This document shows positions 14,693 through 51,400 of a stretch of DNA of 64,000 bases, piece after piece. The DNA comes from Phyllobates terribilis (taxonomy: Eukaryota). The notes beneath the pieces were generated by a model. That model was not told where the DNA came from, searched no databases, and saw only the letters and a program-made list of their open reading frames with translations. Location of the stretch: positions 367,598,001-367,662,000 of the forward strand of contig NW_027362768.1 of the NCBI RefSeq assembly GCF_046119375.1, given 5' to 3'. The translations under genes and the position numbers were made by a program. The stretch's first letter is position 1, and the number at the start of each line of letters is the position of its first letter.

Positions 14693-14752
14693 CATTAAAT
14701 GAAATGAAATTGTGCATGAATTCATGGCAGGACACTCCTTTATAGCCGCAGT

Positions 14753-21497: not shown

Positions 21498-24400
21498 CTA
21501 TGTACAAGAATATAACGGTCATAATACTGCCCCCTATGTACAAGAATATAACGGTCATAATACTGCCCCCTATGTACAAGAATATAATGGTCATAATACT
21601 GCTCCTATGTACAAGAATATAACTACTATAATACTGCCCCCTATGTACAAGAATATAACTACTATAATACTGCTCCTATGTACAAGAATATAACTACTAT
21701 AATACTGCCCCCTATGTACAAGAATATAACTACTATAATACTGCTCCAATGTACAAGAATATAACTGCCATAATACTGCCCCCTATGTACAAGAATATAA
21801 CGGTCATAATACTGCTCCTATGTACAAGAATATAACTACTATAATACTGCCCCCTATGTACAAGAATATAACTACTATAATACTGCTCCTATGTACAAGA
21901 ATATAACTACTATAATACGGCTCCTATGTACAAGAATATAACTACTATAATACTGCTCCTATGTACAAGAATATAACTACTATAATACGGCTCCTATGTA
22001 CAAGAATATAACTACTATAATACTGCCCCCTATGTACAAGAATATAACAACTATAATACTGCTCCTATGTACAAGAATATAACTACTATAATACTGCTCC
22101 CTATGTACAAGAATATAACTACTATAATACTGCTCCCTATGTACAAGAATATAACTACTATAATACTGCTCCCTATGTACAAGAATATAACTATTATAAT
22201 ACTGCTCCCTATGTACAAGAATATAACTACTATAATACTGCTCCTATGTACAAGAATATAACTACAATAATACTGCTCCTATGTACAAGAATATAACTAC
22301 TATAATACTGCTCCTATGTACAAGAATATAACTACTACAATACTGCTCCTATGTACAAGAATATAACTACTACAATACTGCCCCCTATGTACAAGAATAT
22401 AACTACTACAATACTGCTCCTATGTACAAGAATATAACTACTACAATACTGCTCCTATGTACAAGAATATAACTACTATAATACTGCTCCTATGTACAAG
22501 AATATAACTACTATAATACTGCTCCTATGTACAAGAATATAACTACTATAATACTGCTCCTATGTACAAGAATATAACTACTATAATACTGCTCCCTATG
22601 TACAAGAATATAACTACTATAATACTGCTCCCTATGTACAAGAATATAACTACTATAATACTGCTCCCTATGTACAAGAATATAACTACTATAATACTGC
22701 TCCCTATGTACAAGAATATAACTACTATAATACTGCTCCCTATGTACAAGAATATAACTACTATAATACTGCTCCTATGTACAAGAATATAACTACAATA
22801 ATACTGCTCCTATGTATAAGAATATAACTACTACAATACTGCTCCTATGTACAAGAATATAACTACTACAATACTGCTCCTATGTACAAGAATATAACTA
22901 CTATAATACTGCCCCCTATGTACAAGAATATAACTACTATAATACTGCTCCGTATGTACAAGAATATAACTACTATAATACTGCTCCCTATGTACAAGAA
23001 TATAACTACTATAATACTGCTCCTATGTACAAGAATATAACTACTATAATACTGCTCCTATGTACAAAAATATAACTACTATAATACTGCTCCCTATGTA
23101 CAAGAATATAACTACTATAATACTGCTCCGTATGTACAAGAATATAACTACTATAATACTGCTCCCTATGTACAAGAATATAACTACTATAATACTGCTC
23201 CTATGTATAAGAATATAACTACTATAATACTGCTCCCTATGTACAAGAATAAAACTACTATAATACTGCTCCTATGTACAAGAATATAACTACTATAATA
23301 CTGCTCCTATGTACAAGAATATAACTACTATAATACTGCCCCCTATGTACAAGAATATAACTACTATAATACTGCTCCCTATGTACAAGAATATAACTAC
23401 TATAATACTGCTCCTATGTACAAGAATATAACTACTATAATACTGCTCCCCCTATGTACAAGAATATAACTACTATAATACTGCTCCTATGTACAAGAAT
23501 ATAACTACTATAATACTGCTCCTATGTACAAGAATATAACTACTATAATACTGCTCCTATGTACAAGAATATAACTACTATAATACTGCTCCCTATGTAC
23601 AAGAATATAACTACTATAATACTGCTCCTATGTATAAGAATATAACTACTATAATACTGCTCCTATGTACAAGAATATAACTACTATAATACGGCTCCTA
23701 TGTACAAGAATATAACTACTATAATACTGCCCCCTATGTACAAGAATATAACAACTATAATACTGCTCCTATGTACAAGAATATAACTACTATAATACTG
23801 CTCCCTATGTACAAGAATATAACTACTATAATACTGCTCCCTATGTACAAGAATATAACTACTATAATACTGCTCCCTATGTACAAGAATATAACTATTA
23901 TAATACTGCTCCCTATGTACAAGAATATAACTACTATAATACTGCTCCTATGTACAAGAATATAACTACAATAATACTGCTCCTATGTACAAGAATATAA
24001 CTACTACAATACTGCTCCTATGTACAAGAATATAACTACTACAATACTGCCCCCTATGTACAAGAATATAACTACTACAATACTGCTCCTATGTACAAGA
24101 ATATAACTACTACAATACTGCTCCTATGTACAAGAATATAACTACTATAATACTGCTCCTATGTACAAGAATATAACTACTATAATACTGCTCCTATGTA
24201 CAAGAATATAACTACTATAATACTGCTCCTATGTACAAGAATATAACTACTATAATACTGCTCCTATGTACAAGAATATAACTACTATAATACTGCTCCC
24301 TATGTACAAGAATATAACTACTATAATACTGCTCCCTATGTACAAGAATATAACTACTATAATACTGCTCCCTATGTACAAGAATATAACTACTATAATA

Positions 24401-27400
24401 CTGCTCCCTATGTACAAGAATATAACTACTATAATACTGCTCCCTATGTACAAGAATATAACTACTATAATACTGCTCCTATGTACAAGAATATAACTAC
24501 AATAATACTGCTCCTATGTATAAGAATATAACTACTACAATACTGCTCCTATGTACAAAAATATAACTACTACAATACTGCTCCTATGTACAAGAATATA
24601 ACTACTACAATACTGCTCCTATGTACAAGAATATAACTACTATAATACTGCCCCCTATGTACAAGAATATAACTACTATAATACTGCTCCGTATGTACAA
24701 GAATATAACTACTATAATACTGCTCCCTATGTACAAGAATATAACTACTATAATACTGCTCCTATGTACAAGAATATAACTACTATAATACTGCTCCTAT
24801 GTACAAAAATATAACTACTATAATACTGCTCCCTATGTACAAGAATATAACTACTATAATACTGCTCCGTATGTACAAGAATATAACTACTATAATACTG
24901 CTCCCTATGTACAAGAATATAACTACTATAATACTGCTCCTATGTATAAGAATATAACTACTATAATACTGCTCCCTATGTACAAGAATATAACTACTAT
25001 AATACTGCTCCTATGTACAAGAATATAACTACTATAATACTGCCCCCTATGTACAAGAATATAACTACTATAATACTGCTCCCTATGTACAAGAATATAA
25101 CTACTATAATACTGCTCCTATGTACAAGAATATAACTACTATAATACTGCTCCCCCTATGTACAAGAATATAACTACTATAATACTGCTCCTATGTACAA
25201 GAATATAACTACTATAATACTGCTCCTATGTACAAGAATATAACTACTATAATACTGCTCCTATGTACAAGAATATAACTACTATAATACTGCTCCCTAT
25301 GTACAAGAATATAACTACTATAATACTGCTCCTATGTATAAGAATATAACTACTATAATACTGCTCCCTATGTACAAGAATATAACTACTATAATACTGC
25401 TCCCTATGTACAAGAATATAACTACTATAATACTGCTCCCTATGTACAAGAATATAACTACTATAATACTGCTCCCTATGTACAAGAATATAACTACTAT
25501 AATACTGCTCCTATGTACAAGAATATAACTACTATAATACTGCTCCTATGTACAAGAATATAACTGCTATAATGTATATTGTACTGCTCCCCCTATGTAC
25601 AAGAATATAACTACTATAATACTGCTCCTATGTATAAGAATATAACTACTATAATACTGCTCCCTATGTACAAGAATATAACTACTATAATACTGCTCCT
25701 ATGTACAAGAATATAACTACTATAATACTGCCCCCTATGTACAAGAATATAACTACTATAATACTGCTCCCTATGTACAAGAATATAACTACTATAATAC
25801 TGCTCCTATGTACAAGAATATAACTACTATAATACTGCTCCCTATGTACAAGAATATAACTACTATAATACTGCTCCATATGTACAAGAATATAACTACT
25901 ATAATACTGCTCCTATGTATAAGAATATAACTACTATAATACTGCTCCTATGTACAAGAATATAACTACTATAATACTGCTCCCTATGTACAAGAATATA
26001 ACTACTATAATACTGCTCCCTATGTACAAGAATATAACTACTATAATACTGCTCCCTATGTACAAGAATATAACTACTATAATACTGCTCCCTATGTACA
26101 AGAATATAACTATTATAATACTGCTCCCTATGTACAAGAATATAACTACTATAATACTGCTCCCTATGTACAAGAATATAACTACTATAATACTGCTCCC
26201 TATGTACAAGAATATAACTACTATAATACTGCTCCCTATGTACAAGAATATAACTACTATAATACTGCTCCTATGTACAAGAATATAACTACTATAATAC
26301 TGCTCCTATGTACAAGAATATAACTGCTATAATGTATATTGTACTGCTCCCCCTATGTACAAGAATATAACTACTATAATACTGCTCCTATGTATAAGAA
26401 TATAACTACTATAATACTGCTCCCTATGTACAAGAATATAACTACTATAATACTGCTCCTATGTACAAGAATATAACTACTATAATACTGCCCCCTATGT
26501 ACAAGAATATAACTACTATAATACTGCTCCCTATGTACAAGAATATAACTACTATAATACTGCTCCCTATGTACAAGAATATAACTACTATAATACTGCT
26601 CCTATGTACAAGAATATAACTATAATACTGCTCCTATGTACAAGAATATAACTACTATAATACTGCTCCTATGTACAAGAATATAACTGCTATAATGTAT
26701 ATTGTACTGCTCCCCCTATGTACAAGAATATAACTACTATAATACTGCTCCTATGTATAAGAATATAACTACTATAATACTGCTCCCTATGTACAAGAAT
26801 ATAACTACTATAATACTGCTCCTATGTACAAGAATATAACTACTATAATACTGCCCCCTATGTACAAGAATATAACTACTATAATACTGCTCCCTATGTA
26901 CAAGAATATAACTACTATAATACTGCTCCCTATGTACAAGAATATAACTACTATAATACTGCTGCTATGTACAAGAATATAACTATAATACTGCTCCTAT
27001 GTACAAGAATATAACTACTATAATACTGCTCGCTATGTACAAGAATATAACTACTATAATACTGCTCCCTATGTACAAGAATATAACTACTATAATACTG
27101 CTCCCTATGTACAAGAATATAACTACTATAATACTGCTCCTATGTACAAGAATATAACTACTATAATACTGCTCCCTATGTACAAGAATATAACTACTAT
27201 AATACTGCTCCCTATGTACAAGAATATAACTACTATAATACTGCCCCCTATGTACAAGAATATAACTACTATAATACTGCTCCTATGTACAAGAATATAA
27301 CTACTATAATACTGCTCCTATGTACAAGAATATAACTGCTATAATGTATATTGTACTGCTCCCCCTATGTACAAGAATATAACTACTATAATACTGCTCC

Positions 27401-29429
27401 TATGTATAAGAATATAACTACTATAATACTGCTCCCTATGTACAAGAATATAACTACTATAATACTGCTCCTATGTACAAGAATATAACTACTATAATAC
27501 TGCCCCCTATGTACAAGAATATAACTACTATAATACTGCTCCCTATGTACAAGAATATAACTACTATAATACTGCTCCCTATGTACAAGAATATAACTAC
27601 TATAATACTGCTCCTATGTACAAGAATATAACTATAATACTGCTCCTATGTACAAGAATATAACTACTATAATACTGCTCCTATGTACAAGAATATAACT
27701 GCTATAATGTATATTGTACTGCTCCCCCTATGTACAAGAATATAACTACTATAATACTGCTCCTATGTATAAGAATATAACTACTATAATACTGCTCCCT
27801 ATGTACAAGAATATAACTACTATAATACTGCTCCTATGTACAAGAATATAACTACTATAATACTGCCCCCTATGTACAAGAATATAACTACTATAATACT
27901 GCTCCCTATGTACAAGAATATAACTACTATAATACTGCTCCCTATGTACAAGAATATAACTACTATAATACTGCTGCTATGTACAAGAATATAACTATAA
28001 TACTGCTCCTATGTACAAGAATATAACTACTATAATACTGCTCGCTATGTACAAGAATATAACTACTATAATACTGCTCCCTATGTACAAGAATATAACT
28101 ACTATAATACTGCTCCCTATGTACAAGAATATAACTACTATAATACTGCTCCTATGTACAAGAATATAACTACTATAATACTGCTCCCTATGTACAAGAA
28201 TATAACTACTATAATACTGCTCCCTATGTACAAGAATATAACTACTATAATACTGCTCCCTATGTACAAGAATATAACTACTATAATACTGCTCCCTATG
28301 TACAAGAATATAACTACTATAATACTGCTCCCTATGTACAAGAATATAACTACTATAATACTGCTCCCTATGTACAAGAATATAACTACTATAATACTGC
28401 TCCTATGTACAAGAATATAACTACTATAATACTGCTCCTATGTACAAGAATATAACTACTATAATACTGCTCCTATGTACAAGAATATAACTACTATAAT
28501 ACTGCTCCTATGTATAAGAATATAACTACTATAATACTGCTCCCTATGTACAAGAATATAACTACTATAATACTGCTCCTATGTACAAGAATATAACTAC
28601 TATAATACTGCCCCCTATGTACAAGAATATAACTACTATAATACTGCTCCCTATGTACAAGAATATAACTACTATAATACTGCCCCCTATGTACAAGAAT
28701 ATAACTACTATAATACTGCTCCTATGTACAAGAATATAACTACTATAATACTGCTCGCTATGTACAAGAATATAACTACTATAATACTGCTCGCTATGTA
28801 CAAGAATATAACTACTATAATACTGCTCCCTATGTACAAGAATATAACTACTATAATACTGCTCCCTATGTACAAGAATATAACTACTATAATACTGCTC
28901 CTATGTACAAGAATATAACTACTATAATACTGCTCCCTATGTACAAGAATATAACTACTATAATACTGCTCCCTATGTACAAGAATATAACTACTATAAT
29001 ACTGCTCCCTATGTACAAGAATATAACTACTATAATACTGCTCCCTATGTACAAGAATATAACTACTATAATACTGCTCCCTATGTACAAGAATATAACT
29101 ACTATAATACTGCTCCCTATGTACAAGAATATAACTACTATAATACTGCTCCCTATGTACAAGAATATAACTACTATAATACTGCTCCCTATGTACAAGA
29201 ATATAACTACTATAATACTGCTCCCTATGTACAAGAATATAACTACTATAATACTGCTCCCTATGTACAAGAATATAACTACTATAATACTGCTCCCTAT
29301 GTACAAGAATATAACTACTATAATACTGCTCCCTATGTACAAGAATATAACTACTATAATACTGCTCCCTATATACAGGAATATAACTACTATAATACTG
29401 CTCCTATGTATAAGAATATAACTACTATA
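21498..29429. repeat. 35/36 bp minisatellite, array 2, about 220 units, with higher-order duplications
   Basis: Same unit and orientation as array 1. Marker variants recur at 1704 bp and 1012 bp offsets, and a degenerate remnant lies at about 29590-29635. Confidence 0.97.
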
Positions 29430-29814: not shown

Positions 29815-32800
29815 CTAGTGTTCACACTTCACAATCTCCAGGCCTTGCCCGCAGAGCACATACAGATGCCTTTCATCACGTGTCCAGCAGTCTAGTCCTG
29901 ACACGTCGGCCACGTGACAGAATTTGGTGGCCACGTGTTTAAGATCACTGTCCCCAATATTCCAAAGAGTCAGACGCTGATCCACAGACACCGATACCAG
30001 GAGGTCATCTCGGAGGAGGCGCAGTCCGGTGACATGTGCAGCATGAGCAGAAGTGGCAGAGACTGACCGGAGAAGTTGTGCACCTGGTCCTCTGGGACCT
30101 TTGTCATCCAACAATAACCAACACACACAGATAGAATTGTCATCTCCTCCGCTGGCGACCAGATATTGTCCATCCTTAGTCCTCTGGACGCAGAGACTGT
30201 TGATCCCACATTGGTGAGCGGAGAACAAAAAGCAAACAGATCCCAAATCTGGAAACAGAGGTTCTTGTAAGTTTTCATTATTAGTTACCCCAAATTGATT
30301 GTATACCCCAGGCAAATTGTACACACCGAGTTCTACCAAGTGCCGTTTTCTCCACCCCAAGCGCTGGCTCCAAGTATAAAGTTTTGTCTAGTGTCTTCCT
30401 TTAACTATTTAACGTCTCTGTTGACGTTCCATAGGGCTGTCGTATGTAGCCGAGCGCTGCACTCGGGTATCTTGCAGCCTTATAAGCATTGCACAGAATG
30501 GCGGTGCTACAGCCCTTTACTAATGAGGCATTTCAGACCCTTGTTCTCCGGATCGGTGGGCGTCCCAATCACCCAGTTGTATTTTTTAAGAGCATCATTT
30601 TAGGGGGGGGGGGGTAGATATAATATATTCAATATTTTTTTTAGTGGGATGTGCAATTAATAAAAAGGCAATTTCACTACTGACTTTACAGCTTTATTTT
30701 GTGGGTTCTTAGAATTATGGTGAGATCAATATTTTTTTTTCCATGTTTCTCTACAAAAACTTTTTAGATTATTTGTCCAATTTATTTTGCTACATAAAAC
30801 TTTTTCATTTTTATTCTTTTTTTTGGTGAGGTGGAGCTAAACAAATAACAGCACTTTCTAAAAAAAATAAAATAATAATAAAAAATAAAAAAATCATTTA
30901 CCATGCGGAATAATGTTTATTTTATCATGCCGTACTTTCCTGATGCAGAGAGGATTTTTGTTTCTTTTTATATTGTCCCAGTCGCTGACGTGAACATGCA
31001 ATCCTCGGATTGCTTCTGTAATATATTGTGATACTTTTGTATTGCGGTATGTTATTATACCTGGCAGTGTCACACCTCGATCTGCTAAACGACCCTACAA
31101 TCCCTACTGAAAGTGCCATCTAAGGAATTAACCAGCCAGGAGGTTGGATGCACAGAATCCCCCTTACATTAGCCATATGTTGTTTATGTATCATGGATCA
31201 AATGATCTCTGGGGAAATCACTCAGCACTTAATAAATGTATAATGAGCCTGTTTAATGCATGCTAGTACTCAGGCGCTGTCTCTACCTCCCCTATGAGAA
31301 CGAGTGTGCACTAGAATGACTACTGTAGACCGGCGCCGTACAACCTGCCATCCTCAGAAAAGAAGGCAACCCCCTGCCAAAAGACACTAACAGCCCTCCT
31401 TACTGTCTACTATTCTATGAAGATCTAAATTATGACCTAATGGTTATGAGAAGGCTAATATTAGCCTGAGTTACTGCAATTTCCATAGTAAAATGGCAAC
31501 CACCATGCTTTAGACTGCAGCCTGCATTCTGGAAACAAGTGCAGGATACCTAATGTTTCACAGTGACGTCTACTGTTAATTTATAACTTATGCTTTTATA
31601 TATCGTTTTCTACAACCCCTTTTAAGCTATGGACACCTTTGACATGGCAAAAAAATGAGTTTTACTTATGTACGTATTTACCTTTTGGTAATGAAATGAC
31701 ATTACACGTAGGTTTGCAATCTTCATTTCTTCATTCATTCTCAGGCCCCCTGATATGCAGTTTGTAGCTTGATCCAAGTTTCAGATTTTTATCTTGTGGG
31801 AATGTCTCTCCCAGTAATATAGGCTGTATGTGAGGTCTGTGTCTCTCCCAGTAACATAGGCTGTATGTGAGGTCTGTTTCTCTCCCAGTAACATAGGCTG
31901 TATGTGAGGTCTGTTTCTCTCCCAGTAATATAGATTGGATGTGAGGTCTGTGTCTCTCCCAGTAATATAGATTGGATGTGAGGTCTGTGTGTCTCTCCCA
32001 GTAATATAGGCTGTATGTCAGGTCTGTGTCTCTCCCAGTAATATAGATTGGATGTGAGGTCTGTGTCTCTCCCAGTAATATAGATTGGATGTGAGGTCTG
32101 TGTCTCTCCCAGTAATATAGATTGGATGTGAGGTCTGTGTGTCTCTCCCAGTAATATAGGCTGTATGTGAGGTCTGTTTCTCTCCCAGTAATATAGATTG
32201 GATGTGAGGTCTGTGTCTCTCCTAGTAATATAGATTGGATGTGAGGTCTGTGTCTCTCCCAGTAATATAGATTGGATGTGAGGTCTGTGTGTCTCTCTCA
32301 GTAATATAGGCTGTATGTCAGGTCTGTGTCTCTCTCAGTAATATAGATTGGATGTGAGGTCTGTGTGTCTCCCCTAGTAATATAGGCTGTATGTGAGGTC
32401 TGTGCGTCTCCCCTAGTAATATAGGCTGTATGTGAGGTCTGTGTGTCTCTCCCAGTAATATAGGCAGTATGTGAGGTCTGTGTCTCTCTCAGTAATATAG
32501 ATTGGATGTGAGGTCTGTGTCTCTCCCAGTAATATAGGCAGTATGTGAGGTCTGTGTCTCTCCCAGTAATATAGATTGGATGTGAGGTCTGTGTGTCTCT
32601 CCCAGTAATATAGGCAGTATGTGAGGTCTGTGTGTCTCTCCTAGTAATATAGGCTGTATGTGAGGTCTGTGTCTCTCTCAGTAATATAGATTGGATGTGA
32701 TGTCTGTGTCTCTCCCAGTAATATAGGCTGTATGTGAGGTCTGTGTCTCTCTCAGTAATATAGATTGGATGTGATGTCTGTGTGTCTCCCCTAGTAATAT

Positions 32801-35800
32801 AGGCTAGATGTGAGGTCTGTGTGTCTCCCCTAGTAATATAGGCTAGATGTGAGGTCTGTGTGTCTCTCCCAGTAATATAGGCAGTATGTGAGGTCTGTGT
32901 CTCTCCCAGTAATATAGATTGGATGTGAGGTCTGTGTCTCCCCTAGTAATATAGGCTGGATGTCAGGTCTGTGTGTCTCTCCCAGTAATATAGATTGGAT
33001 GTGAGGTCTGTGTGTCTCTCCTAGTAATATAGGCAGTATGTGAGGTCTGTGTCTCTCCCAGTAATATAGATTGGATGTGAGGTCTGTGTGTCTCTCCCAG
33101 TAATATAGGCTGTATGTGAGGTCTGTGTCTCTCTCCCAGTAATATAGGCAGTATGTGAGGTCTATTGGTCTCTCTCAGTAATATAGGCTGTATGTGAGGT
33201 CTGTGTCTCTCTCAGTAATATAGATTGGATGTGATGTCTGTGTCTCCCCTAGTAATATAGGCTAGATGTGAGGTCTGTGTGTCTCTCCCAGTAATATAGG
33301 CAGTATGTGAGGTCTGTGTCTCTCCCAGTAATATAGATTGGATGTGAGGTCTGTGTGTCTCCCCTCGTAATATAGGCTGGATGTCAGGTCTGTGTGTCTC
33401 TCCCAGTAATATAGGCAGTATGTGAGGTCTGTGTCTCTCCCAGTAATATAGATTGGATGTGAGGTCTATGTGTCTCCCCTCGTAATATAGGCTGGATGTC
33501 AGGTCTGTGTGTCTCTCCCAGTAATATAGGCAGTATGTGAGGTCTGTGTCTCTCCCAGTAATATAGATTGGATGTGAGGTCTGTGTGTCTCCCCTAGTAA
33601 TATAGGCTGGATGTCAGGTCTGTGTGTCTCTCCCAGTAATATAGGCTGTATGTGAGGTCTGTGTCTCTCCCAGTAATATAGATTGGATGTGATGTCTGTG
33701 TGTCTCTCCCAGTAATATAGGCTGTATGTGAGGTCTGTGTCTCTCTCAGTAATATAGATTGGATGTGAGGTCTGTGTGTCTCTCCTAGTAATGTAGGCAG
33801 TATGTGAGGTCTGTGTCTCTCTCAGTAATATAGATTGGATGTGAGGTCTGTGTGTCTCTCCCAGTAATATAGGCAGTATGTGAGGTCTGTGTGTCTCTCT
33901 CAGTAATATAGATTGGATGTGAGGTCTGTGTGTCTCCCCTAGTAATATAGGCTGTATGTGAGGTCTGTGTCTCTCTCAGTAATATAGATTGGATGTGAGG
34001 TCTGTGTGTCTCTCCCAGTAATATAGGCAGTATGTGAGGTCTGTGTGTCTCTCTCAGTAATATAGATTGGATGTGAGGTCTGTGTGTCTCCCCTAGTAAT
34101 ATAGGCTGTATGTGAGGTCTGTGTCTCTCTCAGTAATATAGATTGGATGTGAGGTCTGTGTGTCTCTCCCAGTAATATAGGCTGTATGTGAGGTCTGTGT
34201 GTCTCCCCTAGTAATATAGGCAGTATGTGAGGTCTGTGCGTCTCTCCCAGTAATATAGATTGGATGTGAGGTCTGTGTGTCTCCCCTAGTAATATAGGCT
34301 GGATGTCAGGTCTGTGTGTCTCTCCCAGTAATAAAGGCAGTATGTGAGGTCTGTGTGTCTCTCCCAGTAATATAGGCTGTATGTGAGGTCTGTGTCTCTC
34401 CCAGTAATATAGATTGGATGTGAGGTCTGTGTGTCTCCCCTAGTAATATAGGCTGGATGTCAGGTCTGTGTGTCTCTCCCAGTAATAAAGGCAGTATGTG
34501 AGGTCTGTGTGTCTCCCCTAGTAATATAGGCTGTATGTGAGGTCTATGTGTCTCTCCCAGTAATATGGGCAGTATGTGAGGTCTGTGTGTCTCTCCCAGT
34601 AATATAGGCTGTATGTGAGGTCTGTGTCTCTCCCAGTAATATAGATTGGATGTGAGGTCTGTGTCTCTCCCAGTAATATAGGCTGTATGTCAGGTCTGTG
34701 TCTCTCCCAGTAATATAGATTGGATGTGAGGTCTGTGTGTCTCCCCTAGTAATATAGGCTGGATGTGAGGTCTGTGTGTCTCTCCCAGTAATATAGGCAG
34801 TATGTGAGGTCTGTGTCTCTCCCAGTAATATAGGCTTGATGTGATGTCTGTGTGTCTCTCCCAGTAATATAGATTGGATGTGAGGTCTGTGTGTCTCTCC
34901 CAGTAATATAGGCTGTATGTGAGGTCTGTGTCTCTCCCAGTAATATAGATTGGATGTGAGGTCTGTGTGTCTCCCCTAGTAATATAGGCTGGATGTGAGG
35001 TCTGTGTGTCTCTCCTAGTAATGTAGGCAGTATGTGAGGTCTGTGTCTCTCCCAGTAATATAGGCTGGATGTGATGTCTGTGTGTCTCTCCCAGTAATAT
35101 AGATTGGATGTGAGGTCTGTGTGTCTCCCCTAGTAATATAGGCTGGATGTGAGGTCTGTGTGTCTCTCCCAGTAATATAGGCTGTATGTGAGGTCTGTGT
35201 CTCTCCCAGTAATATAGATTGGATGTGAGGTCTGTGTGTCTCCCCTAGTAATATAGGCTGTATGTGAGGTCTGTGTGTCTCCCCTAGTAATATAGGCTGT
35301 ATGTGAGGTCTGTGTCTCTCTCAGTAATATAGATTGGATGTGAGGTCTGTGTCTCTCTCAGTAATATAGATTGGATGTGAGGTCTGTGTCTCTCTCAGTA
35401 ATATAGATTGGATGTGAGGTCTGTGTCTCTCTCAGTAATATAGATTGGATGTGAGGTCTGTGTCTCTCTCAGTAATATAGATTGGATGTGAGGTCTGTGT
35501 GTCTCTCCCAGTAATATAGATTGGATGTGAGGTCTGTGTCTCTCTCAGTAATATAGGCTGTATGTGAGGTCTGTGCGTCTCTCCCAGTAATATAGATTGG
35601 ATGTGAGGTCTGTGCGTCTCCCCTAGTAATATAGGCTGGATGTGAGGTCTGTGTGTCTCTCCCAGTAATAAAGGCAGTATGTGAGGTCTGTGTGTCTCTC
35701 CCAGTAATATAGGCTGTATGTGAGGTCTGTGTCTCTCCCAGTAATATAGATTGGATGTGAGGTCTGTGTGTCTCCCCTAGTAATATAGGCTGTATGTGAG

Positions 35801-38800
35801 GTCTATGTGTCTCTCCCAGTAATATGGGCAGTATGTGAGGTCTGTGTGTCTCTCCCAGTAATATAGGCAGTATGTGAGGTCTGTGTCTCTCCCAGTAATA
35901 TAGATTGGATGTGAGGTCTGTGTCTCTCCCAGTAATATAGGCTGTATGTCAGGTCTGTGTCTCTCCCAGTAATATAGATTGGATGTGAGGTCTGTGTGTC
36001 TCCCCTAGTAATATAGGCTGGATGTGAGGTCTGTGTGTCTCTCCTAGTAATATAGGCAGTATGTGAGGTCTGTGTCTCCCCTAGTAATATAGATTGGATG
36101 TGAGGTCTGTGTGTCTCTCCCAGTAATATAGGCAGTATGTGAGGTCTGTGTCTCTCCCAGTAATATAGGCTTGATGTGATGTCTGTGTGTCTCTCCCAGT
36201 AATATAGATTGGATGTGAGGTCTGTGTGTCTCTCCCAGTAATATAGGCTGTATGTGAGGTCTGTGTCTCTCCCAGTAATATAGATTGGATGTGAGGTCTG
36301 TGTGTCTCCCCTAGTAATATAGGCTGGATGTGAGGTCTGTGTGTCTCTCCTAGTAATGTAGGCAGTATGTGAGGTCTGTGTCTCTCCCAGTAATATAGGC
36401 TGGATGTGATGTCTGTGTGTCTCTCCCAGTAATATAGATTGGATGTGAGGTCTGTGTGTCTCCCCTAGTAATATAGGCTGGATGTGAGGTCTGTGTGTCT
36501 CTCCCAGTAATATAGGCTGTATGTGAGGTCTGTGTCTCTCCCAGTAATATAGATTGGATGTGAGGTCTGTGTGTCTCCCCTAGTAATATAGGCTGTATGT
36601 GAGGTCTGTGTGTCTCCCCTAGTAATATAGGCTGTATGTGAGGTCTGTGTCTCTCTCAGTAATATAGATTGGATGTGAGGTCTGTGTCTCTCTCAGTAAT
36701 ATAGATTGGATGTGAGGTCTGTGTCTCTCTCAGTAATATAGATTGGATGTGAGGTCTGTGTCTCTCTCAGTAATATAGGCTGTATGTGAGGTCTGTGTGT
36801 CTCTCCCAGTAATATAGATTGGATGTGAGGTCTGTGTGTCTCCCCTAGTAATATAGGCTGGATGTGAGGTCTGTGTGTCTCTCCCAGTAATATAGGCTGG
36901 ATGTGAGGTCTGTGTGTCTCTCCCAGTAATATAGGCAGTATGTGAGGTCTGTGTCTCTCCCAGTAATATAGATTGGATGTGAGGTCTGTGTGTCTCCCCT
37001 AGTAATATAGGCTGTATGTGAGGTCTATGTGTCTCTCCCAGTAATATGGGCAGTATGTGAGATCTGTGTGTCTCTCCCAGTAATATAGGCAGTATGTGAG
37101 GTCTGTGTGTCTCACCCAGTAATATAGGCAGTATGTGAGGTCTGTGTCTCTCCCAGTAATATATATTGGATGTGAGGTCTGTGTCTCTCTCAGTAATATA
37201 GATTGGATGTGAGGTCTGTGTGTCTCCCCTAGTAATATAGGCTGGATGTGAGGTCTATGTGTCTCTCCCAGTAATATAGGCAGTATGTGAGGTCTGTGTG
37301 TCTCTCCCAGTAATATAGATTGGATGTGAGGTCTGTGTGTCTCCCCTAGTAATATAGGCTGGATGTGAGGTCTGTGTGTCTCTCCCAGTAATATAGGCAG
37401 TATGTGAGGTCTGTGTGTCTCTCCCAGTAATATAGGCTGTATGTGAGGTCTGTGTCTCTCCCAGTAATATAGATTGGATGTGAGGTCTGTGTGTCTCTCC
37501 CAGTAATATAGGCTGTATGTCAGGTCTGTGTCTCTCCCAGTAATATAGATTGGATGTGAGGTCTGTGTGTCTCCCCTAGTAATATAGGCTGGATGTGAGG
37601 TCTGTGTCTCCCCTAGTAATATAGATTGGATGTGAGGTCTGTGTGTCTCTCCCAGTAATATAGGCTTGATGTGATGTCTGTGTGTCTCTCCCAGTAATAA
37701 AGGCTGTATGTGAGGTCTGTGTCTCTCCCAGTAATATAGATTGGATGTGAGGTCTGTGTGTCTCTCCCAGTAATATAGGCTGTATGTGAGGTCTGTGTCT
37801 CTCCCAGTAATACAGATTGGATGTGAGGTCTGTGTGTCTCCCCTAGTAATATAGGCTGGATGTGAGGTCTGTGTGTCTCTCCCAGTAATATAGGCTGTAT
37901 GTGAGGTCTGTGTCTCTCCCAGTAATATAGATTGGATGTGAGGTCTGTGTGTCTCCCCTAGTAATATAGGCTGGATGTGAGGTCTGTGTGTCTCTCCTAG
38001 TAATATAGGCAATATGTGAGGTCTGTGTCTCTCCCAGTAATATAGGCTGGATGTGAGGTCTGTGTGTCTCCCCTAGTAATATAGGCTGGATGTGAGGTCT
38101 GTGTGTCTCCCCTAGTAATATAGGCAGTATGTGAGGTCTGTGTGTCTCTCCCAGTAATATAGGCAGTATGTGAGGTCTGTGTCTCTCCCAGTAATATAGG
38201 CAGTATGTGAGGTCTGTGTCTCTCCTAGTAATATAGGCAGTATGTGAGGTCTGTGTCTCTCCCAGTAATATAGGCTGGATGTGAGGTCTGTGTGTCTCTC
38301 CTAGTAATATAGGCTGTATATGAGGTCTGTGTCTCTCCCAGTAATATAGATTGGATGTGAGGTCTGTGTGTCTCTCCCAGTAATGTAGGCTGTATGTGAG
38401 GTCTGTGTCTCTTCCAGTAATATAGATTGGATGTGAGGTCTGTGTGTCTCCCCTAGTAATATAGGCTGGATGTGAGGTCTGTGTGTCTCTCCCAGTAATA
38501 TAGGCTGTATGTGAGGTCTGTGTGTCTCTCCCAGTAATATAGATTGGATGTGAGGTCAGTGTCTCTTTCAGTAATGTAGGCTGGATGTGTGCTGTATGTT
38601 TCTCCCAGTAATATAGGCAGGAAGCAAGGTCTCTGTGACTCTCCTAGTAGTATAGGCTGGATACTAAGTCTGTGTTTTCCTCCCAGTAATATAGGCTGGT
38701 TGTGAGGCCTATGTCTCTCTCAATAATATTAGGCTGGATGTGAGCTGTATGTGTATCCAGGGTGCTGATGTTTACATTAGCACGTTAATCAACACATCTT

Positions 38801-41800
38801 TTAACCTGCACTTTTTCCCCTTTAGCTGTAGCCTGTTTTCTCTGCCCTCCCTAGCACTGTACATGCTTCCTCCCCTTTCCACTGCAGATCTCTGTACAAA
38901 ACTGTCTCTGTTGCTATCTCTAACACTGAAAGAAGGGTAGAGCAGATAGAGTCAAGAAGAGCAGGTGGTTTGATGGGTTTGTAACATTTCTGCAGAGCAA
39001 TGAGCTGGATAAAGGGCTTATGGACAATTTGCAACAGCAAAATGGTTGGAAATTGTTAATGAAGACTATTTAAAAAGTTGCTTAATTTTTCATTTAGGAA
39101 GCAAATAAACAGTAAAGAAAATATCTGTAAAGATTGCAGTATCTGGATTTTAATGCTAGTGATAGCCAAAACTGAAGCACCATATGCATAACATATACAG
39201 ACTCACCCTGCAGAGGACAATCTGTTTGCCCCTTCTCCAGCATCATGTCAGCACCGGACATCATGCCAGATACATCCCACAATGCAATGTGACCATCCGT
39301 AGCTCCACTGCACAGCATGACTCTAAGATAAAGGGAAAACATATTTATCTGGTGGCCGGCTATAATAAAGATACAACATGGAGTAATGGGGAATAATGCA
39401 CATCCTGACATCCTCAGGTGTCCGATGCATCAGTGAGGCCTTTATAATGAGCTGACTTCATCATCTATCCTCATCTATCAGCCACAGCGAAGAACATCCG
39501 ACTTCTGAATATGGAGGACTCAACTACAAATATGTCACATGGTCGCTAATTCATTTCAATGGGGTCCATGTAATACTATATTTCTCCTGTAGAGGTCGCT
39601 GTAGGATAGGATATTTGACTATCGGGAGCTTTCCCAGTTGGTCGCCAGGGATTTTGTCCACTAGAAAGGGTTAAAAAAAAAAAAAAAAAATAGTCATTGA
39701 TATAAGACATACAACATCTTTTTCTGGCATCTTACCTTGATTCGGTGCCAGAAGTATGGACGAACGTCTCTACTTTCAGTACACAGCGCTGGTGGTAAAA
39801 GGACTCTGCTATCAGTCTCATCTGCTGAGAGCTCTCACTCATCACAAAGAATCTACAGAAACATAAAAACCATCAAGTAACTAAATGACATGATGGGTCA
39901 TAAAGAAGCAAGATGGCACAAGATGAACGCACATGACCACTTTATTATGTGTGTCCTCCTCTGTGCAGGTGCAGAAGAGCAGCCGATACCCGTCTGTCAG
40001 TCACAGCTCTGCACAGAAGAGAATGCAGCCAAGGAAGCGACCGTGCGGGCAAATCTAGTGACTGCATTCATACTGACCGCTATGATGCGGGAGCGCAACG
40101 TTGCTGCTGCTTTTTTTCTATTAGAAGGCAAAATGCATGAACACAATGAAAATATTGGATCTAGACTGATTTGTCACTCAATGAAATATACTTACAAAAT
40201 GAAGGTTTTTAGAGCATAATTTGGCTAATTCGTGTGTGCCCATCAACCACGACAAGGTAACCTCCATCTGATGGGTTACTATCTATCTTTTTTACAGTGT
40301 TTGTAGTCATTGCAGAGACTTGCTGGTCAGTTTCTTGCTATATTTAACATTGAGGTTTGACAGCCTCTTTTCTGACCATGCACTCCTCCCACTGAACCAC
40401 AGGTGGTTTTAATAGCCTAAGCAGAGACATGCTGTCCATTTATATAGGCTTATAGCCCAAGAGTGGCATATCCAGTGGTAGAGTAGTTACCCATCAGACA
40501 GAGGTTACCTTGTCATGGTTGATGGGCATACATGAATTGGCAAAATTATGCGCTAAAAACCTTCATTTTGTAAGTATATTTCATTGAGTGACAAATCAGT
40601 CTAGATCCAATATTTTCATTGTATTCGTGCATTTTGCCTTCTAATATAATATATTGCTGCTGCTTTTTCTATCTTTTTTACAGTGTCTGCCAAATGGCAC
40701 CCACCAATACCTAGAATAGGATAAAAAGCACATGCATGTGCGCTACCTCTCTATTGAATGTCTATGGAACTGCCGGAAAGACCCAAGTGCTGTACTCTCC
40801 AGCAGTTACACAAAGCCCAAATGCCACACAAGCACAGCAGTCACCCCATTCCTAGGGATGTCAAACTCAAATACACAGAGGGCCAAAATTAAAAGCTTGG
40901 ACAAAGTCGAGGGCCAACATCCATATAGTATAATGGCCCCACATAGTGCTCCATAAAGTATAATGGCCCCACATAGTGCTCCATAAAGTATAATGGCCCC
41001 ACATAGTGCTCCATAAAGTATAGTGGCCCCACATAGTCCTCCATACAAAATAATGGCTCTGTCTGGCATTGCGGGCCAAATATACTCACCCTGCGGGCCA
41101 GAGTTTGACATGTGTGCTCTAGACCATTTCAAAGCCTCTTTCTAGGCATTGGTGCACCCCCATCTTCACAGATAACTACCTAGCCTTCGATAGGTGATGA
41201 CTTTTAATGATGAGAATAACCCTTTAAATACTCATCAATTAATGGGAACATCATCGTTAATTCACTTTGGTTGATATGCACACACCTGACGGATCCATCA
41301 CTGCAGGCAGCGGCTAGATACACAGAGGAGGACGCAGGTTTCATGCTATCTGGAATCTGGTCCACTGTTGTGACCGACATGTATCTGACAAAAAGAAGAC
41401 GAAAATATGTGATATTAAAAATAGTGGAAAATCTGCATATGCACTGCAGGAAACAGTGAAATGCTGTATAATGTTAAATGCTATCAGTCCCATTGAAGTT
41501 GCATAAAGCAGAGGTGCACATGCTCGCCCTCTGCTCCATTCTTGGGACTGGATGGGTCCCCAGCATTTAGTCCTATGGATAGGGGATAAGTTTCAATCTT
41601 GGAAAATCCCCTTAAATTTAGAGTAGGTATAACCAACACCTCCCCCCATTCCATGCAAATGACAGACCCCCTGTTACGAGAGCGTTACCTGGTTTCCGGA
41701 TCCATCTTCCGCATCCTGTGTTTATTCTTGATTCTATCCCAATGTTCGTCCAGTCGGTGGGAAGCTAAGTGGGTGACTTGACATGTAATGCTGCCATTAA

Positions 41801-44800
41801 TCTCCTTCGATTGAATCGACAACCGATAGACCTCAATCTGAGCTCTGCCCCCGGCGGTGAACAGAAGAGTAGAAAGGACACCATCTTTATATTCAGTCCT
41901 GGCTAAAGCCAAAGTTTTCACACTGGAGAGATGGTCACTTATGGTTGAAAGGCAATAAAATTGTTTGGAACAGAAGGCCCAGATATTGATGGTGGTGTCT
42001 TCACTGCTTGTGATAAGGACGTCAATACAATCCTCAATATAATTATTAACCCTCCCGACATACTTAACACTCGTCAGTTCTCGGCCATGTAAGGGCTCCT
42101 TTACTACATTCTGGATTCTTTCAACCTGTTGACTACGGTGGGCAAACACATCACCAGATTTGATATAGGTGAAAACTTCCTTTGTAGCGTCCTTCTTGTA
42201 GCTCCAAGACCTGTGTCCTCCACCACAAGGAACGCAAAGCAGCTTCTCATTAGTTCTTGTACTCCACACCACAAAGTCTGTGGAGTGGAAACCAAGGATG
42301 TGTAAATCTCCATCGGGGGTAAAGGACACTCTTTCGATCCACTCCATCCCTTTGCAAGACTTGAATTTTCGGAGCAGGAACAACTGGTTTCCTTCCACCT
42401 TCAACTGGCGGCAAGAACCGTCTCGACCACTGCTGTACACAAAGCCATTATGGTACTTCACCGATGTGACACCCAATTTGCCATGAAGGCCAAAGAGAAC
42501 ATGGACCGGCTCTTTTTCATGTCCTTTTGAAGGGTTGTGGGAGCTTTGCAAAACCTGAAAAAGCATTAAGGATCCTCTACGGTCACCACAGACAATCAAG
42601 CCTTCTTTGGGTACAAGGGCAATGCTGGTGTGCCACCTCTGCTTGCAGGTGGGTAGAAGAAACCTACAGTTCTCTGTGACAGATGTGATATCTCCAGACA
42701 CACAGGTGACCTCAAGCCAAACCATTATTCCATTAGGACCAGAAGAAAACAGGCTGCAAGTGTCTAAAGATGGAGATGGAGTAACCCATGTCAGACTGTG
42801 CACTTTACCTTCGTGATGCTTCAACTCTTGGCAAGTCTGAGCAGACGAAAGTGAGAAGATCTTCACACTGCCGGTTAAGTTACCGATGGCACATAAGGTG
42901 GAATCCCCCAACCTGACCACTTCTAGGAGACCGTACGATTTATAGGTCCTATCCTCCAGTACTAAGGTCCATTGCTTGCTGATAAAATCATATGTGAATA
43001 TAAAACCCAAGTTTGTCATGATCATAAGACAATTGATATCCGCCAACATGACTGCCTTGGGGGTACCAACATATTTGGAGGCATCAAAATTTAGATTCAA
43101 TAGGTTGCAAGAGGGGGAAGATTTTTCCTTAATTTGCCAAAGACGGATACCACAGTCTGCTCCACCAGTTGCCACCAAACTAAGCCGATCTTGGATGGCG
43201 ACAGCTCTTATGCCTCGACCTTTGTGTCCTTTGAAGTTATGGATGATATCACCACTGTAGCTCCACACGATACAAGCAGAGTCTTCTCCAATACTGATTA
43301 TGTTGTCTGAGAGGAGTCTGACTGACCACACTCGTGCTTGGTGCCCATACAATACAAGAAGACACTGGACTTCTGGATCGCAGCTAGTAAGGCTGCCGAC
43401 CTTCCACACCCTGAGGCTGCGGTCATCAGAGGCTGAAGCTAAAATACCTCTTTGTGCTTCATAATAAATGCTAAAAATTACACCATTGTGTCCACTTATT
43501 CTCCTCCGAGGTTCTACTGTTCCCTCTTCATTGGTTTGGTCACACATTCCCCATATGACAAGCTGGTTGAACACAGTCCCAGAGATCAACGTAAGCTCTT
43601 TCCAAGTTCTTCCCACAAAATGAGCAGAATACAAGATACATTTTTCCGAGCAGTGAATTTCCTTCAGGACTTTTCCTTTCCTGTAATCATAGTAAGCTAC
43701 AGAGTTGTGACCCAAGGCTATGCCAAGGTAAGCGATGGGCTGAGACTCGTCTCCAAGCCACTGAATGTCCCAGATCCAATCATGCAGCTCTCGGAGCTCA
43801 CAGACTCTGGACAGGCTTATTTCTTGATCTCTGCTGCTGAAATCCAGGACAATAAGACCCTTACTTCCAAAAACACACAAGATGGCGCAGTCTGGGGCTT
43901 CAGTACTGAAGGTCTTTATTCCATGAATGACGTAACCATTGAGTACAGTCTCCTTAAGCCTCCAAGGAGTCAAACTTCTGCTTCTCAAGCTATAAACGGT
44001 CAGATTAGGACCTTCCCCTAGGAAATAAAAGACATAACCTCTATTGTAATACAGCTTTATATTATATGGACATTATTGACTAGTACAGGTCTTTCTAGGC
44101 CCATAAACAGTAAACCTCTCTGACTACACAGCAATAATGGAGCTGGGTTGTATGGTTACAAATTAGGACGATGTGAAAGATAGGTGATAACAAGATGTTT
44201 TCTGGGAAAGCTGCATTGTCAGCCATCACAGTAAGCCAGCGCATTTCAGAGAAAAATATACCTGAATGCAATTGTGCAGCCAAACTAGGATTCATGCAGC
44301 CAGCGGTGTAGGCATCATAAATCATAAGACAGGTTTCCTTTAAAGATCATTAGCTATTGAGTCTGATAGTTTCTGAGACTTTGATAACAGCAACTACTTG
44401 TGATTGACCCTTGCAAACGGTCTTATGCTTTGTTATGTATGTGACTTTCAGACTTTTTTTATGTTTGCCAAAAACTACCAAAAGTGCATTTCAACTGCTA
44501 TAGTACTTGAGCTTAGTGTCTAACATACTCCTGGTATAACTCACTGACATTTGTATGCTGTATTGTCATTTACAGGTTTAGAAAAAAAAATTAGCTAGGT
44601 TTCTGTTTCGTTGAAAACATATTGCATTCCCTGTGCTCTTGAAAGCTAAGTGACATTTGTTGAAGCTTCATTGGCAGCCATATTTGTCACACAGCTGCCT
44701 AAAAACCAAGATGTGGGTAAAGTCAACCAAAACAAACGTTATATTATATATTACAATCTGGATTCCTTATCAGTTTGTGGGAGGAAACAGAAGCAAACAA

Positions 44801-45620
44801 GATCTTAGGATGTATAAAAAGAGAGATAAATTCCCGCGATCCCAACGTATTGTTACCCCTTTATAAATCACAGGTGAGGTCACATCTAGAATAAAGAATT
44901 TAGTTTTGGGCTCCACATTTTAAAGAGGATATTCAGAAGTTAGAGTTAGTTCAAAAGCAGCAACTAGACTATTACAAGGGATGAAGGCCTCTCCTATATT
45001 ACACAGGATGGAGGCCTCTCATATGATGAGAGGTTGGAAAAGTTGGGCTTGTTTAGCTTAGAAAAACGACGCCTCAGAGGAGATCTCATTTACATGTATA
45101 AATATGTGTGTGGTCAGTACAAAGGACGGCACATGACTTATTCCTTCCAAAGACCATACTAAGGACCAGGGGGCGCTCATTAAGGGTGGAAGAAAGGTGA
45201 TTCCAGCACTTAAACAGGAAAGGGTTCTTTACAGTCAGAGCAGGGGGACTGTGGAATACCGACCACAAGAGGTAGTGGTGATTGACACTATAACAGCTTT
45301 ATACAAGGGCTGGATGATTTCCTCGATACACATAACATTGTGGGCTACAGTTAAATTAGACAACATGTACAATTGGGGAAGGAAGATTGAACTTGATGGA
45401 CCGCAGTCTTTATTCAACCAAAGTAACCTGGAGGAAACCCATGCAAACACAGGGAGAACATACAAACTCCCCCTGCAGATGTTGTCACTGCTGGGATATG
45501 ACATATACATACACACAGCATGTATCATACAAACATTATCCTCTAGATCTTACCAGCCAGGAGATGATGACCCACAAACTCCAGTGCAGTAATGGGAGCC
45601 ACCAGTAGCTGTGACTCCAT
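29815..45620 (-). CDS. WDR6: WD repeat-containing protein 6 (Trm734 homolog, FTSJ1 partner), 6 coding exons, 1053 aa
   Basis: Exons 45620-45554, 44017-41689, 41384-41286, 39852-39736, 39322-39207 and 30248-29815. All introns are GT-AG, phases are consistent and the total is 3162 nt. Features include [15 protein letters not shown], many WD repeats ([28 protein letters not shown]), [17 protein letters not shown] and the large exon 2 typical of WDR6. Confidence 0.95.
31622..39090. mobile_element. TTAA-type (T2/Kolobok-like) MITE expanded by an internal 7 kb minisatellite
   Basis: Starts TTAAGCTATGGACACCTTTGACATGG. Sequence on both sides of the array (31626-31800 and 38745-39090) aligns by eye with the reverse complement of 60395-60915. 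Confidence 0.75.
31803..38740. repeat. 37/39 bp minisatellite in WDR6 intron 5, about 180 units
   Basis: Unit CCCAGTAATATAG(GCTGT/ATTGG/GCAGT/GCTGG)ATGTGAGGTCTG(TG)TGTCTCT, with degenerate units at the right edge. Confidence 0.97.
40119..40646. mobile_element. Long-armed inverted-repeat element (MITE-like)
   Basis: Arms of about 165 bp (TATTAGAAGGCAAAATGCA...TGCATTTTGCCTTCTAATA) around a spacer of about 200 bp. Confidence 0.8.
40853..41116. mobile_element. hAT-like MITE with an internal 30 bp tandem repeat (x4)
   Basis: TAGGGATGTCAAACTC...GAGTTTGACATGTGTG, an 11 bp matching TIR core, and internal (ATAATGGCCCCACATAGTGCTCCATAAAGT)n. No clear TSD. Confidence 0.65.
44875..45430 (+). mobile_element. 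CR1 LINE 3' fragment, antisense within the first coding intron of WDR6
   Basis: Degenerate translation resembles VRSHLE...FWAPHFK...[26 protein letters not shown]...KGFFTVRA, and the fragment ends with the CR1-like TGAACTTGATGGAC...TTCAACC. Confidence 0.85.
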
Positions 45621-45640
45621 CTTGGTGTTACCGTGGAGCC

Positions 45641-45673
45641 TCATCCAGAGGGGTCTCCCACAGGTGCCGCCAT
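45641..45673 (-). promoter_or_regulatory. Upstream ORF (MAAPVGDPSG*) in the WDR6 5' UTR
   Basis: ATG at 45673, 4 nt into the exon after acceptor TTTTACTTCTAG. TGA ends at 45641, 20 nt before the main ATG, and is out of frame with it. Confidence 0.6.
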
Positions 45674-48443: not shown

Positions 48444-51400
48444 TTATAGACTTGTATCTGGATCTTTCTGTAAGAAAGAGGGAGGTTAATAATATATATT
48501 AATCATTAGACCACACAGGGTGAGTGCACTTGATTAAAACAAACAGGGTATGTACACTGTTGTAACCATTGCATACAGAATTTTAAAAAAGAAGCAACTT
48601 TGCTAATAATTTTTATTAAAAATCTACCATTTTGTGCATGGAGCTCCTATGTAGAGCTATGTGTCATTATGGTAACAGACAAACACACTCTGTGTAGTCA
48701 GATCCTGTAGTCATGTATTGCTTCATTTGCACAGTGCAAAGTTACCTTCATTCAGGTGAATGGGTGTTATAGGCGTCTCCGAATGGTGCAACAAAGCATA
48801 AATAATGAGCCCTTGGCTCCACAGAGCCACAATATTACTTGTTAGGAGAATAGAGCGTCCTCCCTGTGATTAGTTTACCTTCCATAGGCCACGTTCACAC
48901 GTTCAGTATTTGGTCAGTATTTTACATCAGTATTTGTAAGCCAAAATCAGGAGTGGAACAATCAGTGGAAAAGTATAATAGAAACACATCACCACTTCTG
49001 TATTTATCACCCACTCCTGGTTTTGGCTTACAGATACTGATGTAAAATACTGACCAAATACTGAACGTGTGAACGTGGCCATAGGGCAATAGCTAAAGCA
49101 GCTCCACAGTGTCAGGACTCTGCAAACAGCACCTCATATCTCGGCTTCCCGGGGTGGAGTATTATACCGCATATACAGACAGTTGAACCCCTCTTCCCTC
49201 ACTCACGTTGGCTTCATGAATGGAAATCTGCTCATGGTCCATTGTCAGATAGGTAACAGCATCGTGGATAGAGGGGAAGATTTGAGACTTGGTGAAATTT
49301 TCATTAAATAGGTTCCCGTCCTCCAGTCCTTTTATCACGGTCGCTGATGGAATAAACATATAGCATTTTATTTAGAACTAGGGACCATAGGGATTTTCAC
49401 CCGAATTTTCCAGACCCCGAAATTACTTATCTGTACAGTTTCACAGTGACGCATCCCCTCCACCATTGCCACACATGACCACCACATAAATTACTATTCT
49501 TATTATTATGTCTTTACCATTGCAGCCAGCCAGGTAGACGTCCACTTCAATCTCTGCAAAATTTTTGAAGATCTGAAAAAGATAAAAATTAAAAAAAAAA
49601 AATAATAATAATAATAATAATAATAATAATTTAGGGAAGCTGAAAAAAGATTTTCTACATCCCTCACAATAGAGTTATGCAAAAAAAAAAATCTACTTTC
49701 TTCATCTACCAAACTAGTGGGAATAGGTGTCTGTAATATGACTGTGAATAAGGCTGTCAGGTCTTGTTCTGGACCATGTAAATAAGGTTGTCAAGTCTCA
49801 TCCCAATTCTGGACTGTATGAATACAGTTTTCAGGTTTTATTTTGGACTCTGTGAATAAGATTGTCAGGACCTTATCCTATTTCTAACATTTTTTCAGGA
49901 CTCTCCTGGACCCTACATGACTTACAAATTCTTAGAAATTGATTGGGATGTCATCTGACAACTCTGTTCGCACATACTTCGCTCTCACGGAGGTTGAAAA
50001 GACCACCACCAACCCCTGTAGCCCCTCTCACTGTATAATAAAACCTGACTTTCTTTTTTTGTTTTTTTTTTTACATAAATTCAATATTCAGTAAACTTAC
50101 TTTTCTTAAAACACTGACACAGACGGTATCCACAAAATTAACCGAAGAGAAATCCAATATTAATGAGTCGAAATCGGGTTTCTCCAGCCCCAGCGACTTC
50201 AGGGTGTTCTTTGCAGAGGTCTCTTCATTGGCAGCGTGACCCGGTACAACTATAATGGATCCCTCAGTCATATCCTGCTCCTTGTGCTATTGGGAGATAG
50301 AATAAATCATGGACTGTAAGGCGTTCCTGACCTTATTTACATCGTTGTAAAACTACAACTCCCAGCATTCAGCTGTCTAAAATGCAACTTTTTACTTGGC
50401 ATAAATGACATAAATGAAAGAAAATGAATAGTTACCTCTTGTATCTCATATTCTAGTTTTCCAAGATCGAGGCGGTCAAAGGCGATGTTGTCATGTCCTG
50501 TTATCTACGAGACAGATGATATATCGGGTTTATGGTAAGAGAAGACGCCATATTCACCAGAAAATGGAATTAGCAATTTTGGTGACTTTAACGCAGCTGT
50601 CATGCAGCAATAGTGGCGTTGCATGGGTAGATTGGTCAGATTTTTGCGAAAGGGGAATGAAGGGGACGCAGCTCAGGGATAGCCACACTCTCACCTTCTT
50701 GGCCTCATTCTCCTTCTTGGCTTTTTTCATTGCTTTAAGTGCTCTTTTTATTGTTTTCTTTATCGCTTTCCTCTTCTTCTCGATCAGCTTCTCCACATCT
50801 ACTCCGCACTATATAGGAGATATGGACAGACAGACATCAGCCGTGTGCCTCACCTATTCATTAGCCTATTCACTAGTACTGCTACAATACACAGTGCCCA
50901 TGCACATAGAGGTAGTGTGCCAATCAGCCAGTTCTGCAACTATATACAGTGCCAATGAACATAGCAGTAGTGTGCAAGGCAGCTCTGCTGTGTATATAGT
51001 GCCCGTGCACATAGCTGCAGCGTGCCAGACAGTTGTGCTGTGTATATAGTGCCCGTGCACATAGCTGCAGCGTGCCAGACAGTTGTGCTGTGTATATAGT
51101 GCCCGTGCACATAGCTGCAGCGTGCCAGACAGTTGTGCTGTGTATATAGTGCCCGTGCACATAGCTGCAGCGTGCCAGACAGTTGTGCTGTGTATATAGT
51201 GCCCGTGCACATAGCCGCAGCGTGCCAGACAGTAGTGCTGTGTATATAGTGCCCGTGCACATAGCCGCAGCGTGCCAGACAGTAGTGCTGTGTATATAGT
51301 GCCCGTGCACATAGCCGCAGCGTGCCAGACAGTTGTGCTGTGTATATAGTGCCCGTGCACATAGCCGCAGCATGCCAGACAGTTGTGTTGTGTATATAGT

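Follow-up and report, generated by a model that had tools for sequence, protein, structure and literature searches.

The locus described here raises the question of how a minisatellite of 6.9 kb came to lie inside an intron of WDR6, a housekeeping gene, in the poison frog Phyllobates terribilis. The locus is part of a 64,000-nucleotide stretch of contig NW_027362768.1 (positions 367,598,001–367,662,000, assembly GCF_046119375.1), which was analyzed as a whole and is referred to below as the window. An original prediction, made from the letters alone, proposed that the array grew from one segment of a MITE (miniature inverted-repeat transposable element), and that an unexpanded relative of this element lies about 60 kb into the same window. 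Our analysis shows that the array unit is homologous to an internal segment of a dispersed element, with both arms of that element flanking the array collinearly. The whole is probably best explained by an old element, inserted at a TTAA and carrying one unit, in which a slipped duplication and subsequent unequal exchange would have produced the 181 units now present.

Tandem Repeats Finder reports a single array with a period of 39, containing 181.8 copies at 86% matches and spanning 6942 nt. When the array is split at a conserved anchor, 181 units are obtained, of which 106 are 39 bp and 74 are 37 bp long; a single TG at the border of the unit accounts for the difference. Four main unit variants are set in recurring multi-unit blocks, and identical units are frequent, with 28 copies of the top variant. 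The pattern of variants along the array is ordered and non-periodic and includes unique blocks, and approximately five degenerate units are located at the right edge. The array also contains a 337-residue open reading frame (ORF) that encodes a repeated peptide. No CTCF core motif is present in the unit, as judged by eye only, and an Rfam scan of the whole window returned no family match.

The sequences on the two sides of the array match the reverse complement of the 60-kb copy with E-values of 4e-29 (left flank) and 1e-33 (right flank). With the array reduced to its first unit, the left arm, the unit and the right arm form one collinear high-scoring segment pair with this copy, in which 378/579 positions are identical (E 5e-55). 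The corresponding BLAST score is 201 bits, compared with 26.8 bits for the best of 100 shuffles. A global MAFFT alignment of the collapsed array-bearing copy (copy A, spanning 31626–39149) with the 60-kb copy (copy B) contains 389/560 identities, or 69.5%. At the position matching the array, copy B has exactly one unit (60754–60718, minus strand). The right arm of copy B also contains a nested foreign piece of ~60 bp (approximately 60331–60392) that is not found in copy A. This piece resembles 55145–55217, starts with AGGG after TAAA, and is probably a fragment of another small element.

These alignments bear out much of the original prediction: the flanks match copy B in reverse complement, every short shared stretch that it named is present, and copy B is unexpanded. 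The proposal that some 180 repeats arose from a transposon segment agrees with the 181 units found here and with the single unit in the paralogue and in most family members. Two of its measurements require adjustment, as the element is about 0.6 kb rather than about 0.5 kb long, and homology on the right side, thought to end at 39090, continues for ~60 bp to 39149. Copies A and B had also been described as a before-and-after pair. The one-unit paralogue is there as described, but copy B is a paralogue that has diverged by 30% and is not the literal ‘before’ state of the array locus.

The flanks of the array are a discrete, multi-copy dispersed element. A profile of copies A and B locates two further partial copies (C and D), and the family is therefore represented in 64 kb by two full and two partial copies. 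The 5′ terminus of the element in copy B reads AGGCTATGGACAC. An inverted copy of this 24-nt terminus is found at the predicted 3′ end, up to the last letters, in copy C (p 0.0075) and copy D (p 0.001). It is not recognizable at the ends of copies A (p 0.67) and B (p 0.69), where the terminal inverted repeat is too degraded for recognition. Fisher's combined p for this position-restricted test on copies A–D is 0.0015; a window-wide scan gives 10–12 at the predicted ends versus 11–13 in shuffled windows, and is not significant alone.

The flanking and terminal letters suggest a TTAA target. TTAA is present on both sides of copy A, the 3′ end of which was placed partly by looking for TTAA, and on the 5′ side of copy B. 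On the 3′ side, copy B has TGTA, copy C TTTA and copy D GTTT. In all, TTAA lies beside three of the six readable termini, and two more are one letter off. The termini themselves consist of AGG followed by C-T, T-A, G-T or T-T. At ~0.6 kb, the element falls under the limit of approximately 0.8 kb for MITEs and is without coding capacity. No ORF of at least 70 residues occurs in copy B or in the left arm of copy A. Two such frames in the right arm of copy A and the 337-residue frame in the array look like chance ORFs, although none of the three was searched. An autonomous partner is absent from the 64-kb window.

The label ‘MITE’ used in the original prediction is plausible and moderately shown: the TTAA at both ends of copy A and the many copies agree with it, but inverted termini are seen only in the partial copies C and D. 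We also considered a retroposon, with a tail of a short or long interspersed nuclear element (SINE or LINE), which was suggested by an A-rich, AATAAA-like stretch near the right end and by the 5′-truncated partial copies. This assignment was dropped because copies C and D have inverted termini at their 3′ ends and copy A has TTAA on either side. The T2 MITEs of Xenopus have a TTAA target and an AGG... terminus, and Kolobok transposases are presumed to mobilize them (PMC6004289). Our element resembles them; of the T2 terminal motif AGGRR, the AGG is present at the family termini and the two purines are absent. We therefore refer to the element as T2-like and do not file it as T2.

Contigs from another individual of the same species and from three other species provide a view of the family outside the window. 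Contig depth is not copy number, and was used for the position of steps and for orders of magnitude only. In all four runs, the depth is single-copy up to 31599 and then steps up in the bin 31600–31675, which holds the 5′ end of the element. Between 2173 and 3868 contigs per run lie on the arm and unit, and thousands of contigs from the four species fall on 31712–31842. Numerous listed pieces cover 31712–31842 with unlike sequence on either side, corresponding to one unit between two arms. The commonest loose end is directly behind the first unit (99–141 contigs per run) and resembles the start of the right arm. The usual family member in all four species is therefore a left arm, one unit and a right arm. 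Tandem joints, at which a contig goes back 39 letters, are also present in all four species, and the depth summed over the unit is 46,000–425,000 versus a single-copy depth of ~10–18. Arrays of the 37–39-bp unit thus exist elsewhere in all four species.

Two contigs from relatives include the insertion site itself. In organism B, a single 1907-nt contig leads from WDR6 exon 6 through intron sequence and 50 nt of flank into the left arm, reaches the middle of the first unit and then goes on for 133 letters that do not resemble the units that follow. In organism D, one contig contains the intron flank and 31622–31840, followed by 222 unlike letters. A de Bruijn contig cannot continue in this way through a homogeneous array, which suggests that the insertion predates these species and that the large array is lineage-specific. 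Judged from these junctions, the insertion in WDR6 intron 5 is old and shared with two relatives at the same site, and the expansion of the array appears to be confined to one lineage. The one-unit norm of the family, together with relatives' contigs that have the same insertion without a homogeneous array, is better evidence for the ‘before’ state than copy B.

These observations suggest how the array may have arisen. A non-autonomous, DNA-transposon-like element of ~0.6 kb would have entered a TTAA in WDR6 intron 5 before the sampled poison-frog relatives split, and would have carried one 37–39-bp internal segment, like most of its family. The family unit is bracketed by an imperfect 9-bp direct repeat, the two copies of which, at the start of the unit and directly after its end, are alike at 7/9 positions. 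Short bracketing direct repeats are a typical substrate for a first slipped duplication, and the initial event may have been replication slippage or misaligned repair between the two 9-bp repeats. Repeated unequal exchange between misaligned units could then have generated 181 units in the lineage of P. terribilis. We infer unequal exchange because blocks of several units are repeated in the array, many of its units are identical and those at the edge are degenerate; recurring blocks, identical units and unhomogenized edges are the usual signature of turnover by this process. The array would since have been carried as inert intron DNA.

Several points weigh against this history. A few units may be old, to judge by the degenerate ones at the right edge. 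The length of the array rests on one assembly. In the relatives' contigs, a short or degenerate array may be present behind the first unit, where the letters are unread. The inverted terminus is not recognizable at either end of the two full copies. Finally, the arrays found elsewhere in all four species leave room for import from another expanded copy.

Import is the strongest of the alternatives, although we consider it unlikely. A resident one-unit element would have been converted by ectopic recombination or gene conversion with an expanded family copy, using the arms as homology. The tandem joints and summed depth, which show that each of the four species has arrays of this unit in other places, agree with this, as do the four distinct unit variants arranged in blocks within the array. 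No donor is seen, however, and the arms of the family copies in the window are only 65–70% alike, making them poor homology for conversion. Growth in place would predict the degenerate edge units and the exactly collinear arms just as well.

It is improbable that an already expanded copy transposed into the intron and that the array was mobilized after its expansion. The TTAA on both sides of the whole 7.5-kb copy A would fit such an event, as would the existence of arrays of the unit elsewhere. The contigs of two relatives argue otherwise, since in them the element and its flank occupy the same site and the first unit is not followed by a homogeneous array. In addition, the arms are old (~30% diverged from the paralogue), yet many array units are identical. 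There is a slim chance that the array is real while the assembly misrepresents how long it is or how it is ordered internally. Homogeneous arrays with a 39-bp unit are difficult for assemblers, and the short-read contigs of another individual end at 31685, before the array; on the other hand, the variant pattern is ordered and non-periodic, with unique blocks that long reads can anchor, and the window has no runs of N. Least probable of all is an ancestrally multi-unit family in which copy B and most others collapsed to one unit: tandem arrays can contract and the degenerate right-edge units could be old, but in the contigs of all four species the two arms most often enclose a single unit, and it is unlikely that most copies were independently reduced to exactly one.

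Growth in place at an old insertion would have occurred within WDR6, an essential gene encoding a tRNA-modification cofactor. The gene was identified from a 767-residue open frame (41685–43988, minus strand) that matches yeast TRM734 over 608 residues. The best relatives of this frame are frog WDR6 proteins, with 92% identity to that of Ranitomeya variabilis. Using tblastn with the R. variabilis protein, we located six coding exons in the window on the minus strand; these were placed one by one rather than in a joined spliced model. Canonical splice sites are found at the donor of exon 5 and the acceptor of exon 6, and the reading frame continues across them. The similarity of three relatives' contigs holds up to 30225–30251, at the edge of exon 6. 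Intron 5 thus spans 30249–39206 (8958 nt), and the array accounts for 77.5% of it, as expected from the earlier claim that the array makes up most of a 9-kb WDR6 intron 5. The coordinates of the array, the element copies and the exons are collected below.

Coordinates of the array, the element copies and the WDR6 exons in the window
Feature	Position	Strand	Basis or remark
Minisatellite array	31803–38744	+	181 units of 37 or 39 bp
Copy A left arm, 177 bp	31626–31802	+	aligns to reverse complement of 60915–60755
Copy A right arm, 405 bp	38745–39149	+	aligns to reverse complement of copy B
TTAA outside copy A 5′ end, candidate target-site duplication	31622–31625	+	sequence
TTAA outside inferred copy A 3′ end	39150–39153	+	end located by aligning it with copies B, C and D
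Copy B, unexpanded paralogue, 633 bp	60283–60915	-	nested piece of ~60 bp included; TTAA at 60919–60916 outside 5′ end
Partial copy C, right arm only	9890–10161	+	DALRD3 intron; nhmmer E 1.5e-6
Partial copy D, 3′ part only	48545–48637	-	inverted copy of 5′ terminus at end
WDR6 exon 1	45549–45644	-	tblastn
WDR6 exon 2	41688–44018	-	tblastn
WDR6 exon 3	41252–41386	-	tblastn
WDR6 exon 4	39735–39854	-	tblastn
WDR6 exon 5	39207–39322	-	tblastn, R. variabilis residues 878–916; splice sites read
WDR6 exon 6 (last)	29818–30248	-	tblastn, residues 915–1060; acceptor read

The right end of copy A is 57 nt from the splice donor of exon 5. Copy B lies inside an intron of a sulfate-permease (SLC26-type) gene, a neighboring exon of which matches PF00916. 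Both copies end within 60 nt of a host splice site, the distance for copy B being ~27 nt from an apparent acceptor (60256–60283). The array contains six GT dinucleotides per 6942 nt on the WDR6 pre-mRNA strand compared with 1073 on the other strand; the rest of intron 5 has 53 per kb. Similarly, there is one donor-like site on the pre-mRNA strand and 345 on the other. The low GT count is due to the composition of the unit and its orientation, and the array therefore offers almost no false splice donors to the pre-mRNA. The scarcity of GT may be linked to the tolerance of the array, an observation at a single locus that cannot be called selection.

A broader interpretation, which we regard as possible but doubtful, is that the 37–39-bp segment is an intrinsically expansion-prone seed. 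It would have given rise to arrays repeatedly and independently in no fewer than four species of poison frog, with array units now far outnumbering arms and with the GT-free orientation surviving preferentially in introns. The basis named for this property is the 9-bp bracketing repeat together with tetramers linked to recombination-rich frog DNA. If true, the segment would be a measurable, orientation-filtered driver of intron growth in the large genomes of poison frogs.

The window contains many other repeats. Nine unrelated minisatellite arrays with units of 30–86 bp lie between 3452 and 62993 and comprise 26.3 kb, or 41% of the window. Two arrays, 13234–14693 and 21498–29429, are 7 kb apart and have a common 35/36-bp unit in a rotated register; the second, the larger, comprises 7.9 kb (222 copies), its end lying ~390 bp downstream of the WDR6 stop codon. 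The array at 55888–57545 has a 40-bp unit, and its flanks within ~70 bp of the ends are mutually inverted (76% over 54 bp, E 2e-5). It is possibly a further inverted-repeat element whose interior has expanded. In WDR6 intron 3, a 130-bp inverted repeat (40116–40245 and 40520–40649, 94% identical) adjoins a 30-bp minisatellite at 40920–41057. A further inverted repeat (63160–63347 and 63459–63651, 81% over 193 bp) is located just to the right of an array with an 86-bp unit (61899–62993). The 50-bp array at 50866–54366 (minus strand) has 66 copies with 96% matches and contains three overlapping open frames that exceed 1000 codons. These long frames are a by-product of the repeat and do not indicate a gene.

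Tandem repeats born from MITEs and other transposons are established, in frogs particularly. Arrays in frog subtelomeres derive from portions of transposons, including a 52-bp minisatellite from SINE/tRNA-V as well as CR1 and Kolobok-2 (PMC10794172). Such expansions, Kolobok-derived ones included, have been attributed to unequal crossing over in regions where recombination is frequent and arrays are dense (PMC10794172). The WDR6 array resembles these in that a short portion of a dispersed element has expanded at some loci only, here in a window that is 41% minisatellite. The complement of its unit contains TGGG and ACAG, two tetramers reported as enriched (PMC10794172), a likeness of sequence content and not of chromosomal position.

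A MITE with tandem repeats in its central region is also known outside frogs. According to its abstract, DTC84 of the clam Donax trunculus is a MITE with a short central region of variable-number tandem repeats (PMC3879986). The P. terribilis element shares this arrangement; unlike DTC84, with its short central repeats as described there, it has one unit in most copies and 181 in copy A. In Xenopus tropicalis, the MITE miDNA4 drives a satellite (Scalvenzi and Pollet 2014, as cited in PMC9659126). Its satellite monomer was born within the MITE and then amplified in tandem, as proposed here. The citing review assigns miDNA4 to Tc1-mariner, whereas the ends of the element described here suggest a TTAA-targeting superfamily.

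A further counterpart is the Xenopus MITE Xmix of the T2 family, which gave rise to the Xstir tandem repeats (Hikosaka and Kawahara 2004, as cited in PMC6004289 and PMC9659126). In both cases an internal segment of a frog element has been amplified in tandem and other copies are unexpanded. Xmix is a MITE that targets TTAA, ends in AGG... and forms lineage-specific arrays; the P. terribilis element, plausibly a MITE, has an AGG... terminus too and appears to resemble Xmix in its target and in the restriction of its expansion to one lineage. The two differ in that the terminus here has AGG, then C or T, then T in place of AGGRR, the host is a poison frog and the array lies in an intron of a housekeeping gene; this comparison is one of descriptions and not of sequences.

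Alongside these systems, the WDR6 locus offers a well-resolved view of the birth of a minisatellite, in which the seed, its bracketing repeats, an unexpanded paralogue, the one-unit norm of the family and apparently unexpanded same-site copies in relatives can all be seen. It shows that a single event of this kind is able to lengthen the last intron of WDR6 by 7 kb with the reading frame undisturbed. It also suggests that the growth of arrays, beside the insertion of transposons, inflates poison-frog genes, as illustrated by the minisatellite content of the window. The locus does not reveal a new mechanism; like Xmix and Xstir, miDNA4 and the subtelomeric arrays, it represents a process already known in frogs, of which it is a clean example.

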